64,000 nt of DNA from Pocillopora damicornis (GCF_003704095.1 NW_020843823.1:1-64000); one strand, 5' to 3'. Positions 19,101 to 27,300 are shown, numbered from the stretch's first letter. Numbers and translations are program-made. Notes: generated by a model from the sequence alone, not told the origin.

Positions 19101-21195
19101 ATTTTGAAGTATGTTGGGATAGGAAACATGTTGAGGCACCAGGCCCTTGCAAGAGAGTCCAAAGAAAACAAGACATGAATTTCATATATCTAAAATCATA
19201 ATTTTTCAACTAGTTGGAATGTTTGGTAAAATTTCCGCACAGCCCCATACTACATTATGCATTCAGTTCTTGGATAGAGAAAACAATGACAAAAACAATA
19301 GATTGCCGTTGGGAAAACAGATTTGTTTTACAATAGTATGGGGCTGTGCGGAAATTTTACCGAATGTTCCAGCTTTCGTTCACAATACACAGACACGTTC
19401 GTACTCTGTAAAGTTGATGTGTAAACTAAATTAAATACCTCCCTTTCCGCTTCTTAGTGAATAACTTTTCACATAACAAACCTTTCTCTCATATGTTTAT
19501 CCTTAATAAATAAATAAACTGTTATCAAGAATGTCACTGTTTACACGCAGCGCGCAAGTTGGATGTTTTCTTTATAGTTTGTTACAAAAACAAGCGAGAA
19601 GATGACTAATGCGGATCGTTTATCTTTATTTTACGCCGGTTTCGCAACTTGTTCCCTCCTAACATGCCGAATTCGCTAAGGCAGATTTCTTTGGGACAAG
19701 ATGTTGATTCTAAAAGATCGTGGGAGTAGAATGATAATATGAAGTAAGTGACGAATTCGGCATGTAAGTTGCGAACATGTAGCGAACTTGACACTAGCGT
19801 ACTCGTAGAGTAGCGAAACCGGCTGACAATTCTGTAATTTGACCTTCACGTATTAGGTCAGGCTCCAAATCCTTCGGCGAGGTAAGATTGAATTACACAG
19901 CAGTTTGTATCTAACTAGCAACTTATGTACAAAATGAATTGGGATCGGTATAAAAATTCCTACCTAATTCACAACTTACAACTTACAGCGCTAATCCAAG
20001 GAAAGCTTAGGTTCCACCTTTAGATAGGAAAACATAGGCATACCTGTGAGCCAAACCCGTGTCCAAGCTCGTGAGCAAACGTGATTTCTGAAACTCTCGG
20101 AGGTGTAAATCTTCCGTAAAGCTTCAAAGTCACGATACCAGTGTTGTAACTTCGTTTCTTGCCTCCGCCAATATCGACAAAATCATCGCAAATTCCTCCT
20201 AGCGCATTCCCTTTTGGATCTCCGATCCAAGCAAGACCCAAAATCCCGCCCTCAAAATCGCGATCGGTAAACAGAAACGCCTCGCATACACCACTGTGAT
20301 CAATGCTAGAGAAGAGATCTAAAAGGGTATCTATACCGACGTTGCTGTCTTTTACTTGGGAAGGTAAATTGTTGGGCGCTTTCTCGCTGTCGTTGAAGGC
20401 AACGATGGTCTTGACGCGGAAAGTTATTCCTTTTTGGTAGAAGTAATCTGTGCCGTTAAATTCGTTCGTGTAAATGATTTGAGCAGCCTGTACTTGCTTG
20501 ACGAGCTGAAAGATCGCCTTGGTTTTCCCACCGTATAACTTGGTGAAAAAGTTATCGGCGTAGAGACTAAGCGTACAGGCGTTTTTGTCGAGCTCTGATA
20601 CACTTTGTCTACGAGAACGGGAACGGTCTTGCCCTTCAAGCGAGCGTCTAACTCGCTCTGGAACCGCAAAGGCTGGTACTCTATGTTTGATATCTGCAAA
20701 ATTATGTTCGTACTCTAGGTCTTCCTCTTTATACATAACTGATGGAAAATCCTGCTTCTCATCAAAGTACCAGGATGACGGATCAACGTAGTAATTCTCG
20801 CTTCCACTCAATATCTTTCCGTGAAAGCCATCATCTTTGCTAATAACTCCGTACACATCAGAGTACGGTCGGCCTTCCACTTTCCCGCGTACTACGGAAT
20901 CCCGCTCAAAAGGTATCGGTTTTCCATCCCCAGAGAGAATTTTTGCATCTGCTGTAAATATCTCTCTATCGGGTTGCAAGTTTAGCCGATGAAATTTCCC
21001 AAACGCGGAAAAGGAGAATTTACCATGCGTGCTTCTTTCAACGGCTCTTCGATGAATGTTGTGGAAAGAAGTCGGGTCATAGTACAGAGGTTCGTAGTGT
21101 CTGATAAACTTGTTCAATCGCCTTCCTGTCCTACTCTCGCATTCATAACCAAGAGCGATGAGAAAGAAAAGAATGAACTGAAAATGTGGAGACAT
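16120..21195 (-). CDS. ADAM10: ADAM10/kuzbanian metalloprotease, 726 aa. Exons 21195-20044, 18579-18225, 18105-17804, 17139-16992, 16343-16120
   Basis: Signal peptide, LNKFIRHYEPL prodomain start, FTDRDFEGGILGLAW, zinc motif HELGHGFGSQH with Met-turn FIMF, disintegrin CGNKIVEEGEECDCG, Cys-rich GYCDVFAICRRVD, TM YWWAIML...LCARY, and the TPSSNP juxtamembrane motif. Confidence 0.96.
16883..16970 (-). repeat. Intragenic duplicate of the ADAM10 intron-1 acceptor plus the first ~70 nt of exon 2, inside intron 4
   Basis: Matches ~18509-18597 with one substitution in the pyrimidine tract. Confidence 0.9.
17402..17614. mobile_element. Degenerate TTAA-flanked MITE family copy
   Basis: Internal motifs gagtgaccag...aatttctcc...gagatcttgagagtgaaagg are shared with other copies in the window. 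Confidence 0.6.
19212..19374. mobile_element. Small MITE-like element with ~41-bp terminal inverted repeats in ADAM10 intron 1
   Basis: agttggaatgtttggtaaaatttccgcacagccccatacta (19212-19252) versus its near reverse complement at 19334-19374. Confidence 0.75.
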
Positions 21196-21365
21196 GGCTC
21201 TAACAAGTTACCGAAGTGAGCAAAGAAATACACTCCCACATCCAACAGACGCGGTGGTCACGCTTTCGTAGAATAGCGGCAACACCTTCGTGATTAATCG
21301 GAAGACGTCGGTATATTGCCGAGTATTGACGAGGCAAAGAAAAAGGTCCCCGGGAGATAATCAAA
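21196..21365. promoter_or_regulatory. Bidirectional promoter region ADAM10 (-) / XPNPEP3 (+)
   Basis: Divergent ATGs are separated by 170 bp. CpG-richer region with a YY1-like AAAATGGCGG motif at the XPNPEP3 start. Confidence 0.65.
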
Positions 21366-24300
21366 ATGGCGGCCAATGTGAAACACATTGCAGCGCAAAT
21401 ACCCAAATTAACTCTTTTTTCGAAAACAAATCGACGCTTATTTGGTAAGTTTGAAAGAGAGATACCTTAGAGACTTGTTCTGGATTCGCTCTAATATTAT
21501 AATAGTTGGTAGATTTCTCCATGGAGCAAAGTTTACGAGGTGGAAATGTCGGCATCGTAACGCCACAATGTCTGCCCCTCAGGCTTGCGAGGAAAGCACC
21601 TGGAGCGGTATCGCTGGACCAGAGACTTTTGCCAAGGAAGGTAAAACATTCCCCCTTTTTTTCACTTTTACAAGTTGCTCTACTATGGCTGTTTCGTCTG
21701 GGCTTTGAGTGATCCTTAATTAAGGGAAACCCGTAGTTATACCCCGGTAGCCGGTCCCCCATGCGATTTACGCGGATGCCCGTTGCGGGCTGACAAAAGA
21801 CAAATTTGGATCATACTCAGTATTTGAAAGACTCATGTCGAAACACTACTTTCCATTTTTCTTGGTATCTTGGTATCTGCAGTTTTGTTGGTGCAAATTG
21901 TTTAGAACTGGTGTTAACTGTTTTCTGTCTTTCCGTGACGTGGTATCTCAGAGATAGTGATCCTGCATATCTCACTTTCATAATTATTTGCTCTATAAAG
22001 TCGCTTTCCTTGGGAAGGCCGGAAGGACTTCCCTTTATGATTTTATGAATCAGGAAGTTTGGGTTTTGATTATGAACGTTTTCCCTATAATCTTCTTTAT
22101 TAGGGTTGGGGGAAGGGGGTATGGAGAGGGTCCAAAAAAACAAAACAAAAAAAAAATCAGCAAGTATATGTTTGTGAGTGATTCAATTAAGCTGAGATTT
22201 CAAAGCCTTAGAATGAAGTAGACATTTAAATTTTTAAAGGAATTCTTCTTTGCTGTTAGTTTCCACTCTTATTAAAGGGAATGTTTTTAATGTTTTAAAT
22301 CAATTTCATTCCATAAAGTGTTTACAAACACTCAAATATGTCCTGTTGCTTTATTTCTCAGAAAAACTGAAGTCCCTCAGTGAAAAAGGACTAAGATTTG
22401 TTGGTGACAAGGCAAAAACAATTGGACAACCAACACCAGAATCGCACCCTCACCTGATGGAGGAAAATGAAAGTGAGTGACAAGGATGTCAGTCAAGTTA
22501 ATTTTTACTTCAACTGTGAACCAACATAAGCATCCAGGACTTAGCTATTAGACACAGAGACCTGTGTCTATTAGAATAAGTCCCTTCTTTGAATTAACTT
22601 TTATTCAGAACTTAAAGTTATCGGTGAGCTCTCCTCTCTGTAAAGGCCCTTTTCTCTGTCACCACCCTAGCAAAGAGGGACCATCCAGCTGCAACTTATT
22701 CAGATCTCTATTGCTTGAATCCACTAGAATTAATATTAACCCCCCCTGGATGGAATGTGAGTCAGATACCTTCCTTTCTCCACATTCAGTCAGGTTCCCC
22801 TGACAGTTCACCTACAGCTATATATCAATTTATGCATCCAGATGGAAAGGATAAGGTGACATTGTAGTGCCTTGCTGGTGAACACTATAAATAAATTCCC
22901 TGCACAGGTCTCGAACATGAACCTCTTGACTCAGAGACCAGCACACTCCCAGTTGAGCGATTGTGTCTCCCAATGTGCAAAAAGTAAAAAAAAGGAACAT
23001 TAGACAATGGTAGCTGACTTAAAGTTTTGTCCTTTATTTTGGCTGGGTAGTTTTTTTGTGAAAAAAGGTACAATTCTATTTGAAAGACTGTCAGTCTTTC
23101 AGTTTCTTTCACCTTAGTAAGTTTTGGTTCAAATTGTTCATGTTATTTCATTATTTGAAACCAATCTGGTTATTACATTCATTAGTTTATTGGTTATTAC
23201 ATTCATTAGTTGATTTGGTTATTACATTTATCAGATGATGATAATGAATGTAGAATACAGAGGTCAGAAAAAAAAATTAAACCCCTAGAAAAATTTTATA
23301 CCACAACTAAATTAAATTACAAATTATATCCTTGTAAAAGTTCAAAAATGCAGTATAACTCAAAGGGCACAGGTACTCTGTATTGTTGAGACTGAAATTA
23401 TGCTTTTACATGTGGTAATGATTTCTAAAGAAAAAAGCTGATTTTCTGGTAAATATTTGAAATTTGTGGCCAATGTAAGAAAATATGAAAAGAGCAGAAT
23501 TAGATAGCAAGCACAGTAACTGTAGATTGACCCAATTTGGAGTGATCTTGTCACAGTTTACAATTTTAATGACTCTTCTTGCATTTAAAGTAAATTGTTG
23601 TCACAAATTATACTAATTTGAAATCATACCTTATCAAATCTTGCTTTATCAATACCAGCTGTAAAAGTTGTACCTTAATGTTTATCACAAAATGTGATTT
23701 ACAAATATTAATTTTTTTTAATCTTATCCATTGTTCTACTGGATTCTTCTTTTCAATCACCGATTGAGAAGGAAAAGGATGCTTTTAACCAAAATTAGTA
23801 ATAGTGATAACAAGACTTTTTTTCTTAGAATATGAACCTTTTTGTAGTAACTAGTGTTTGTTAGCAGGTTTTTTAATATTTATGAGAGGGATAGCAGATT
23901 AAGAGATTTTCCAAACTTGTTGTTTGTCACTGTTGCAGGTAATACCTGCCAACATATTATTACAAAATTGAAGAAACAATAGAGCAAGGGATTGTGGGAA
24001 TGGTTATTTTTATCTTTCTCACAAAGCACATGGATTGAGGAACTACTCTAAAAATGTAAAGTGAACTCCAAATTTTTGGGTCTTTTTGGACTAGCATCTG
24101 AAATGGAAAGGAGCTGCATTTATGCTTATTTGGATAGTGGATTATTGTTTCAGATTTTTTATTTTAGATGTGACTTAAAAGACACTTGGTCATTACTACT
24201 TTGCTAGCCATATACTTCTGTCACCATGTGGAATTTTACTCTCCGACGGATCATATCTTTGGCAATTTTTTTCTGCACTTTATTTGCTATTTTTTTGGCC

Positions 24301-27300
24301 ATGTCACACTTCCCTGTGCTCGATGAGATTATAGCGTCAAAGAGAAGCTCAATTGTCAGTGAAACTCTTGATTTAGAAGAGCCAGTCATTTTAGCATATG
24401 CTGGTTATGCAACAGAGAATGAGGAAAATTTGATGATGAAATTGTCAAGTCCATCAGCTCCTGAATTATATCCAACTCCAAGACGACCAAGAAGAGGAGT
24501 GGCCGATGACACTTTTGGTACTTGTTTGAAAACCTATCAATTTAATGTTATTTTTCAGTGAGCTAGTAAACCAAAATGTGATGTAAATTGAAAATCTAGG
24601 CCTATGTAAATCTCTCTGTGCTTGTGATTTGCAACATGCAATTGAAGAGGTTAAAGGGAGAAAATGATTTTCTGTCAATCTACTGCTGCTTGCAATTAAT
24701 CTCTCAAGTATTTTTATTTTCTTGCATTATTTCTATTTTGTCATATTTCAACTTTATAAAATTTCCTCTTTTTTACCAATCCAGTTTTGAGAAGCCTCAA
24801 AAATTAAATTTCAAACCAATGTTAGTAGTTTTTTAATTGCAAAAGCTTAATCTACAGCCTCAATTGTGAGTTTTATTTAAGAATTAACTATGGCTGATGG
24901 TAAAATATCAATTCATTATAATTAAGGTTTTAAGAAAAGACCATGAATAATTTTTTTGAATCATTCATGCAAAGAATAATCTGAACTTTACAGAATGTGA
25001 AACATGAAACTCAGAAAACCTTGAACACTGGACAGGTGTGTTTCTGGCCTCTCATGGTGTTGGTGAAAAACCAACCAATCAATCTACAATGATATTAATT
25101 GATGAGTTTATGTTTTTCTTTAAGTTTTTTTGTGTGCCATGATCTGTAGTATGATTGGTCATGACACAGTAAGTAACCCAAAGATATTGCACAATTATGT
25201 TCATGATTTTCCTAGTTTGATAGTAAGTGTGCGTATGTTTATTTTTAGTCACCCCTGGGATTACCAAGAAGGAATACAGAGACAGAAGACACAAACTTCT
25301 AAGGTTCTTGTTATTCATTTATTGTCTGTCAATTCTTTTATTAAAATCACTTTGTCAATCATTGTGGCACATTTGCAGGCTAAAATAAAGGTTTTCTTTG
25401 GTTGTAACCAAACAGGTGTCTCTCACTTTACAAATTTTCAAACAGCTAAACCCCATTTTTTAACATCCCAAGTGAAACAAAAGGCTCACTTGATTTGAGA
25501 TACTCTTCAAACAGTGGTGGTTTTTTCATTTTGTTGCTGATATCATTTGTCTGGAAGAAAAGGATTTTTCCTTTCTACTTCTCTACAATGTAGATGAAAT
25601 GGACTGTTTGAGTCACATATTATGTGTGCTGAATCATGGTGTTAATTTAGCTGAAGTATTTGTATGATTATGTGATTAAATGGAATTCAACTACTACTTC
25701 TTGATGAACTACAACTGATCTGTTTCATAATTTTGTCAGAGGCATGGGTAGACTTGATCTTAAGGTATAATGTATTTGCAAAAATTATTTAATTTTATAC
25801 GTCATCTTTCAATCTAAAGTGTACTCTCCAAGACACATTTTGGTGAAACTCACGATAAGCATTTGGTGGTTATTCCAAGCAACCCAACGAAACATATGAC
25901 CATAGATGTACCGTAAGTTTACCTTCCAAGTTTATATCAAGTTGTGAGAGTTAGTTTGTACAATATTTAAAACATTTGAAATGTGTTAAGGAAGTTTAAT
26001 TGTAGTATGGAATAAATTTAAGCTCAAAATGATTATGATGAGTCCTATCTATTTTATTTCAGCCTGTGTTGACCTTTGTTGACAAAGAATTTTATGTTAA
26101 AACACAATAGAAACATAAATCTTATAAACAAAACCTGAAACTATGGAAAGGGAAATAAGTGTATGCTATACTATACAGTCATCTGAATTGTTTTAATCAA
26201 TAGCTTGTGGACGATGTCACCCTGATTTAAAAAGTGCTCTGATCTGAAAATTTTACCTGCTTATATTATTGTTATGCTTTTTTTAGATATCCATTTAGAC
26301 AGAACACAGACTTTCTTTACTTAACTGGTTTTCAAGAACCTGATGCTGTTTTAGTATTACGTAAGTTGTTGCCCAAACTTTGAGTGGAAGGAAGATACTT
26401 CCAAGGGTTATGCCATCTTTGATCAAAGTTTGATGAAGATTAAACAGTTTTTCATTGTACAGAAACCTTGGAGGGTCAGTCACTGCCTGCACATAAGAGT
26501 ACCTTGTTCATTCAACCTCCAGACCCCAAAAGGTAATTACTCATTACAATACTTTTTATTTATAAGCTCTGTTTTTATGCTCAGGTTTAATTGGATTCAA
26601 CAGGCCCCAGGGTGGATCCAGAATTTGGTGAAGGGGAGTTTGGATAAATGTCTACCAAATGGTGGACAATCCTAGGGGGGTCAGAGGGCATACTCCTGCT
26701 AAGAAAGTTGAAATAAAGGTCTTAAAAAAAGTTATTTGGAATATTGATTTATACGTGTCACTTAGTAGTTTGGCTTACCAACAGCAATTAAGTTGCAAAT
26801 TTAAGCAATAGACCACACTTTCCATCAGTTTACCAGTGTGATAATCCACACTGGATGTCTGGAGAACATGAAAAAAGTTTGTGAATCACAAGCTTGAGGT
26901 GAGTGGTTTACAAACTTTTCAAGCATTCTCCCAAAATCCCAATTATGTGTTTCTACAAGTCACGGTTATTTTGATGAAAAAGTATCTTTGCATCTCAGCT
27001 CTGTAGGCCTCAGTTATGGTCCAATAATAAGGGCAGGAAGGGGTGGGCTATGCATTGCTTACTCGTCTCTTGCTATGGTATTACACCTCTGTTGAGGCTG
27101 TTTGTTTTCTTGTTAGGGAGTTGTGGGAAGGTAAGAGGCCTGGAACAAAGGATGCTATTCTGTTTTTTGGATTTGATGAGGCAAGTTTGAAAGCTTGTCA
27201 CATTCAGTTGATTTTACAGGAATTGTGACTCTTGTGATAGTGTCTTGCTGTTCTAAAATTCTTATTGTCAATTTTTCCTCTATTTTCCAGTCATACTCTA

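Follow-up and report, generated by a model that had tools for sequence, protein, structure and literature searches.

A conserved intronic first exon in a coral XPNPEP3/Icp55 gene and the secretory form of aminopeptidase P that it is predicted to encode

XPNPEP3/Icp55, an aminopeptidase P, is regarded as a mitochondrial (or cytosolic) enzyme, and the question raised by its gene in the coral Pocillopora damicornis is whether the same catalytic domain is also made with a different N terminus and sent elsewhere. We analyzed a window of 64,000 nucleotides (nt) of this genome (GCF_003704095.1, NW_020843823.1:1-64000; positions are counted from its first letter), in which an original prediction had placed an additional exon inside an XPNPEP3 intron, encoding a hydrophobic anchor and a furin-type site and able to turn the enzyme into a membrane or secreted form. 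In this coral, XPNPEP3/Icp55 begins in either of two mutually exclusive ways, with canonical exons 1 to 3 or with an intronic alternative exon. That the latter is a real, coding, spliced alternative first exon we regard as close to certain. Its sequence features further make it probable that it supplies a type II signal anchor and a convertase site, taking the M24B domain into the secretory pathway.

Two 5' ends of one gene

The RNA evidence consists of contigs, rather than raw reads, from four RNA-seq runs of four studies, aligned on 21300-27250. Contig depth is a crude measure of transcript level, contigs do not reveal transcript 5' ends, and rare variants drop out of them. Common to all four runs are the joints 21444->21506, 21640->22362, 22472->25249, 25303->25820, 25912->26287, 26360->26463, and 26532->27117. 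The alternative exon is joined to exon 4 in X1 and X2, which are polyA RNA-seq runs from independent studies. A 610-nt contig of X2 spans 23939-24516 and continues with 31 nt of exon 4, from 25249, across a GT..AG joint, and a contig of X1 spans 23977-24517 and carries a loose end, TCACCCCTGG, that is the start of exon 4. The 24517->25249 junction, on which the original prediction proposed to be judged, is thus present in contigs of two studies, and no joint to an unrelated nested gene is seen. Since the 234-Mb genome (234,350,878 bases in 4393 contigs) holds one copy of the exon (the sole other match has an E value of 0.7), a retrocopy or processed DNA copy does not account for the joined form.

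The open reading frame (ORF) of the exon is as had been described. It starts with the ATG at 24226, in the context gtcaccATG, and its 97 full codons end at 24516, followed by G 24517 and the donor GT at 24518, a phase-1 end in frame with the shared exon. At the acceptor (ttttag^TC at 25249, the caret marking the exon boundary) G plus TC gives Val, after which the protein continues TPGITKKEY. An in-frame TAG at 24205-24207 lies upstream of the ATG, so that read-in from any upstream exon is blocked. The original prediction was right that the exon lies within an XPNPEP3 intron on the same strand, but its numbering does not stand: intron 2 and exon 3 are really intron 3 and exon 4, because the exon at 21506-21640, seen in four RNA runs, had been missed.

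The two 5' ends lead into the same enzyme. Translated, the three canonical 5' exons give an N terminus that is basic and acid-poor, typical of a mitochondrial presequence; exons 1 and 2 are separated by a 61-nt intron (21445-21505) in all four RNA runs. An AMP_N domain is present downstream (PF05195, E value 2.9e-11, exon 26285-26362) and is also recovered in a genome-wide scan, and a Pfam search, exon by exon, places Peptidase_M24 (PF00557) on three exon pieces. Motifs with the five metal ligands (Asp, Asp, His, Glu, Glu), IRIEDD among them, are readable in the downstream exons, the ligands being assigned by analogy with E. coli PepP. The nearest solved relatives, compared over one exon only, are E. 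coli PepP, human XPNPEP3 (5x49), and yeast Icp55, ahead of prolidase (1a16, 4e-15; 5x49, 1.5e-13; 6a9t, 6e-11; prolidases, 1e-8). By these sequence signatures, the downstream exons appear to encode a complete PepP/XPNPEP3-type M24B enzyme; those 3' of 27117-27180 are placed by homology only.

Other accounts of the exon were considered and rejected. The reading as a cassette or poison exon entered from exon 3 was set aside, as there is no joint into 23900-24226; moreover, a phase-1 reading from the acceptor-like ctag at 24207 meets a stop ~40 codons on, and the TAG at 24205 shuts the coding frame. Contigs of the four runs, which drop rare forms, hold no joint from exon 3 to the alternative exon, and the sole joint leading out of exon 3 is 22472->25249. 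A separate nested gene was rejected because the intron holds no other conserved ORF and the junction leads to XPNPEP3 exon 4, and a repeat or transposon origin because the exon is single-copy. A Pfam search of the exon returned no family, and the intron around it gave no Rfam match at an E value of <= 0.1. Repeats in intron 3 are trivial ones only, among them three tandem copies of a 24-nt unit at 23167-23239.

Conservation of the exon among corals

To place the exon in other corals, we compared its 97 residues with protein, metagenome, and assembly data. A phmmer search of 1.84 billion representatives gave 7 clusters, a profile search of a 5.8-billion-cluster collection gave 37, and a scan of JGI metagenome contigs added 6 further loci; neither the phmmer nor the profile search detected relatives outside coral-type matches. 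The 37 database ORFs and the 6 JGI loci are unnamed short ORFs on genomic or unspliced coral-type contigs (DNA or RNA). The spliced junction is evidence from the window coral, the sequences of its relatives being all unspliced.

Thirty-nine sequences of other coral assemblies carry an intact exon. Wherever flanks are available (L001, L006, L009, L017, L018, and L019, which like the P numbers below are labels of related coral contigs or ORFs), it occupies the same intron, ends at a phase-1 donor (G^GTA), and forms a Val codon at the junction. The TPGITKKEY exon follows it 288-760 nt downstream in L001, L009, L017, L018, and L019, and the GQPTP...HPHL exon stands upstream of it in L001, L006, L017, and L019. 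In all lineages similarity ends at F-G, the G^GTA donor, the next residue (T, I, or S) being the donor GTA translated through, and the read-through tails beyond the donor vary in length and sequence among orthologues. That conservation halts exactly at the donor, with divergent tails beyond it, argues for selection on the spliced reading frame. Pairwise Nei-Gojobori (NG86) ratios of nonsynonymous to synonymous substitution rates (dN/dS) are 0.24-0.64 at dS of 0.6-1.8, and third codon positions vary most. Against the nearest lineage, L019, the exon is gap-free, whereas the flanking intron has ~1 gap opening per 20 nt. The alternative exon is a protein-coding exon under purifying selection. The original prediction had allowed for frame disruptions in related species; there, frame, start, donor, and intron position are kept, in the same intron where flanks are available and with dN/dS below 1.

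Conservation is uneven along the exon. Its middle is fast-evolving, with identity down to 33%. At the N terminus, L-R-R (L6, R7, R8) before the helix is fixed or nearly invariant among orthologues. In 22 of the 22 full-length orthologues the hydrophobic span of ~20 residues has a 19-residue Kyte-Doolittle (KD) mean of 2.24-2.89, and all 22 have an N flank charged +1 to +3. The end of the exon is conserved as P-[DE]-L-x-P-T-P-R-R-x-[RK]-R-G-T-x-D-x-x-F, and R-X-[K/R]-R-G is found in 39 of 39 sequences (RPRR in 29, RSRR in 6, RSKR in 3, and RARR in 1). Over the positions R87, R89/K, R90, and G91, P4 and P1 are always Arg, Lys is accepted at P2 only, and Gly91 is invariant; the Arg at P4 and P1 and the Lys confined to P2 form the pattern that would be expected of a furin-type convertase site.

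Two related sequences depart from this picture in their annotation or quality. In L006:3441-3812, a contig of 1x coverage, the N-terminal third has GTG in place of the ATG, closely preceded by an ATG in another frame, and no L-R-R, which reflects either sequencing error or lineage-specific decay; its close relative P0028 is intact. The ORF call at L002:394-948 (P0004) has a 73-residue extension upstream of the true ATG that reads TGA as Trp, in a non-standard code, and that is not real under the standard code.

Apart from the exon and a conserved non-coding block at 23925-24036, the intron is not alignable across the coral lineages. Both RNA contigs begin inside this block, that of X2 at 23939 and that of X1 at 23977. 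Its conserved cores are AACAAT, more fully AACAAT(G/A)G, and CACATGG, AAAGCACATGG. The block is a candidate promoter or transcription start region, or a conserved leader in the 5' untranslated region, and its cores include possible Sox-like and E-box-like motifs of a putative promoter. Runs X10 and X14 have near-continuous unspliced contigs over 22964-25278, with 22494-22891 almost without coverage. This distribution would fit retention of the intron or, in some samples, an intronic transcription start far 5' of the ATG. An acceptor-like yTTGTAG(C/T)TAG at 24195-24210, ~25 nt before the alternative ATG, is kept in L009, L017, L018, and L019. A non-coding leader exon further upstream may be spliced at this site; contigs of the four runs show no joints onto it.

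Predicted targeting and release

The features first read in the exon, a MWNFTLRR tail, a hydrophobic span, an acidic/Pro-rich stalk, and RPRR at residues 87-90, are confirmed from the sequence. In the window exon the best 19-residue KD mean is 2.53. An AlphaFold2 model built on an 18-sequence alignment has a confident helix over residues 2-27, with a predicted local distance difference test (pLDDT) score of 82-93, and a low-confidence stalk. PTPRRPRRG stands close to the end of the exon peptide, and the catalytic fold starts eight residues after the R-X-[K/R]-R-Gly motif. Around this motif the model gives residues 75-97 no secondary structure (pLDDT 63-72); a lumenal placement of the site hinges on the topology suggested by the N-terminal features. 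Enzymes of the convertase kind are encoded by the host genome, with at least 10 loci of the proprotein-convertase P domain (P_proprotein). The motifs for targeting and for cleavage are the best-conserved parts of a fast exon, as a targeting-plus-cleavage function predicts, which lends support to the membrane or secreted form originally proposed, with its putative topology and cleavage.

How such a form would arise can be set out in steps. With transcription starting within the intron, the mRNA would lack the coding sequence of the mitochondrial presequence and carry in its place, as first coding exon, that of a type II signal anchor. Insertion dependent on the signal recognition particle (SRP) would leave the eight-residue tail in the cytosol and place the whole aminopeptidase P fold, from TPG onward, in the lumen of the endoplasmic reticulum (ER) and Golgi or outside the cell. 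A furin-type convertase cutting after R90 in the late secretory pathway would then produce a soluble enzyme starting at Gly91, and the freed enzyme, judging by its family, would trim N-terminal residues that precede proline on lumenal or extracellular peptides. Targeting of the alternative isoform to the ER is the likelier part, and on the anchor's features we hold it with good confidence. Release by a convertase, judged from the motif, is favored somewhat more cautiously. The enzyme is probably also made, then, as a membrane-bound or shed form. The charge of the 15-residue C flank of the span is -1 to +4 and matches or exceeds that of the N flank in some lineages.

The same exon could instead encode a cleavable signal peptide, with the enzyme soluble in the lumen from the outset and R-X-[K/R]-R marking removal of a pro-segment. 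The secretory destination would be the same, and A-M-S before H28, or A-I-S in many orthologues, fits the (-3,-1) rule. The uncharged span of ~20 residues, however, exceeds the typical h-region of a signal peptide as generally known, and at the corresponding position several lineages carry I-F-S-P or G-I-R, both ill suited to signal peptidase, so that we consider a cleaved signal peptide improbable.

Another arrangement would have the helix anchor the enzyme in a different membrane, for instance the outer one of mitochondria, so that the catalytic domain faces the cytosol and the basic motif serves a purpose other than convertase cleavage. Signal-anchored outer-membrane proteins likewise have a short N-tail and one helix, many orthologues have a conserved basic LFK[RK] after the helix, and the parent enzyme is mitochondrial. 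The span is nonetheless very hydrophobic (KD 2.2-2.9), which favors SRP and the ER, and R-X-[K/R]-R in 39 of 39 sequences, with Lys at P2 only, would be left unexplained, whereas a lumenal convertase site predicts it. We give this arrangement little credence.

Some findings weigh against a signal-anchored, convertase-released enzyme made from this exon. The 24517->25249 junction occurs in only two of the four runs examined, and in those runs its contig depth is ~8-9 versus ~58-59 for the canonical junction. Past +3 the donor sequence (G^GTACTT) is weak, and unspliced RNA reads through it, over 24499-24660 in X1 and ~22964-25278 in X10 and X14. A leader starting near 23939 would hold six upstream ATGs (24011, 24030, 24055, 24103, 24122, and 24168) with short upstream ORFs (uORFs), which could limit translation from the ATG at 24226. 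That the transcript is non-productive (regulatory or of the nonsense-mediated decay type, from an intronic promoter), or that only the unspliced 111-residue ORF is used, as a small membrane protein, is very improbable: several uORFs in the possible leader, unspliced contigs running through the donor, and database ORF calls that are all of the unspliced form speak for it, but against it stand dN/dS below 1, the conserved ATG, a frame intact in 39 sequences, the conserved phase-1 donor and Val junction codon, and conservation that stops at the donor with tails of differing length and sequence beyond.

Possible role, known systems, and layout of the locus

If the alternative exon does direct the enzyme into the secretory pathway as a type II protein, the peptides of the cnidarian nervous system come to mind as substrates. 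X-Pro and X-Pro-Pro N termini of cnidarian peptides have been described as protecting groups at which unspecific aminopeptidases stop, and the enzymes for N-terminal processing and inactivation of these peptide signals are still unidentified (PMC7523074). The suggestion in the original prediction of a role in neuropeptide precursor maturation conflicts with this view of X-Pro as a protecting group (PMC7523074): an aminopeptidase P would strip the protection, not create it, which makes inactivation or retuning the more natural guess. We put forward only tentatively, and as something on balance doubtful, that reef-building corals have long kept a secreted or ecto form of Icp55/XPNPEP3. An intronic promoter would drive it, a type II anchor would hold it in the membrane, and a convertase would set it free; outside the cell it would trim X-Pro-protected peptides and so end or retune neuropeptide signals. 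The isoform is a concrete candidate, open to test, for an enzyme that trims Xaa-Pro peptides outside the cell in cnidarians. From one gene, the same catalytic domain appears to reach a second compartment of opposite topology, by way of an exon that is under selection across many coral lineages. The case also shows that short, fast-evolving targeting exons inside introns are discoverable from raw sequence, and that reads across the junction, combined with conservation reaching no further than the donor, can verify them.

Parts of this arrangement have precedents. In the human APP3m/APP3c pair of XPNPEP3 the second isoform is cytosolic, and the coral gene resembles this pair in subfamily and in having isoforms of one gene that differ only in the N terminus and hence in location. 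The coral exon differs in adding a signal anchor and a convertase site, without a detectable relative outside coral-type matches, and to our knowledge neither known XPNPEP3 isoform, mitochondrial or cytosolic, has a hydrophobic signal anchor or convertase site. Two isoforms of human XPNPEP3, one of them mitochondrial, are mentioned in the literature (PMC5712345). Full-text searches of the literature yielded no description of a signal-anchored, secreted, or alternative-first-exon XPNPEP3; automated annotations may list the isoform. Likeness to yeast Icp55 and E. coli PepP, also M24B enzymes, lies in the AMP_N and pita-bread domains and in the Asp, Asp, His, Glu, Glu motifs. Icp55 works in the matrix, trimming proteins whose presequence has been cleaved off, and PepP resides in the cytoplasm; we know of no secretory form of either.

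A functional precedent for the proposed coral isoform is vertebrate XPNPEP2, a glycosylated M24B Xaa-Pro aminopeptidase and ecto-enzyme that acts on extracellular peptides such as bradykinin. It differs in belonging to the XPNPEP1/2 subfamily with Peptidase_M24_C, in having a C-terminal glycosylphosphatidylinositol anchor after a cleaved signal peptide, and in being encoded by a gene of its own. Two to three XPNPEP1/2-type loci (with Peptidase_M24_C, on C134, C464, and C3979) exist in the coral too, and we dropped the idea that the isoform fills the gap of a missing XPNPEP2-type gene, as these loci are present. A second AMP_N locus of this genome, on C2282, is likely a prolidase. For the topology, the parallel is with ectodysplasin-A, BAFF/APRIL, and collagen XVII, type II membrane proteins that are shed by furin-type convertases. 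They share with the proposed coral isoform the order of parts, a short tail in the cytosol followed by a signal anchor, a stalk bearing R-X-[K/R]-R, and a functional ectodomain; they differ in that there is no sequence relationship and the coral cleavage is only predicted.

The features of the locus are collected in Table 1.

Table 1. Features of the coral XPNPEP3/Icp55 locus, in window coordinates (a caret marks an exon boundary)
Feature	Position	Strand	Remarks and evidence
Canonical exon 1	21366..21444	+	ATG at 21366, opens basic mitochondrial-type presequence; phase-1 end; joint 21444->21506 in 4/4 runs
Canonical exon 2	21506..21640	+	Basic, Arg-rich; joints 21444->21506 and 21640->22362 in 4/4 runs
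Canonical exon 3	22362..22472	+	Phase-1 end, donor A^GTGAGT; joint 22472->25249 in 4/4 runs, contig depth 18-59
Conserved non-coding block	23925..24036	+	190-300 nt upstream of alternative ATG; alignable in 8/9 coral lineages
Alternative first exon, coding part	24226..24517	+	97 codons + 1 base (phase 1); ORF, junction to 25249, conservation, single copy
N-tail MWNFTLRR	24226..24249	+	Net charge +2, predicted cytosolic; L6, R7, R8 invariant or nearly so
Uncharged hydrophobic span I9-F29	24250..24312	+	Predicted signal anchor/transmembrane helix; KD, AlphaFold2
Acidic/Pro-rich stalk, variable	24313..24483	+	Ends in conserved P(D/E)LxPTPR; weak conservation, low pLDDT at residues 42-62
R87-P-R-R90, predicted furin-type R-X-[K/R]-R site	24484..24495	+	Followed by invariant Gly91
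Alternative-exon donor GT	24518..24519	+	TTTTG^GTAC; joint GT..AG 24517->25249; G^GTA conserved
Shared exon 4	25249..25303	+	Start of conserved aminopeptidase P fold; acceptor common to both junctions
Remaining shared exons, AMP_N + Peptidase_M24 pita-bread domain to stop	25820..31670	+	RNA joints, Pfam, homology
RNA-defined shared exons	25820-25912, 26287-26360, 26463-26532, 27117-27180	+	RNA joints

A further joint in run X1, 22252->26079, has non-canonical ends (CT..TG), a contig depth of 421, and a shorter side of 21 nt, and it probably stems from a repeat or from another organism in the metatranscriptome. Upstream of the gene, a large reprolysin/ADAM-type exon at 20023-21207 on the minus strand stands head-to-head with XPNPEP3. 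The ADAM-XPNPEP3 pair is syntenic in corals, a reprolysin neighbor on the other strand being found upstream also in L001, L017, and the P0020 contig.

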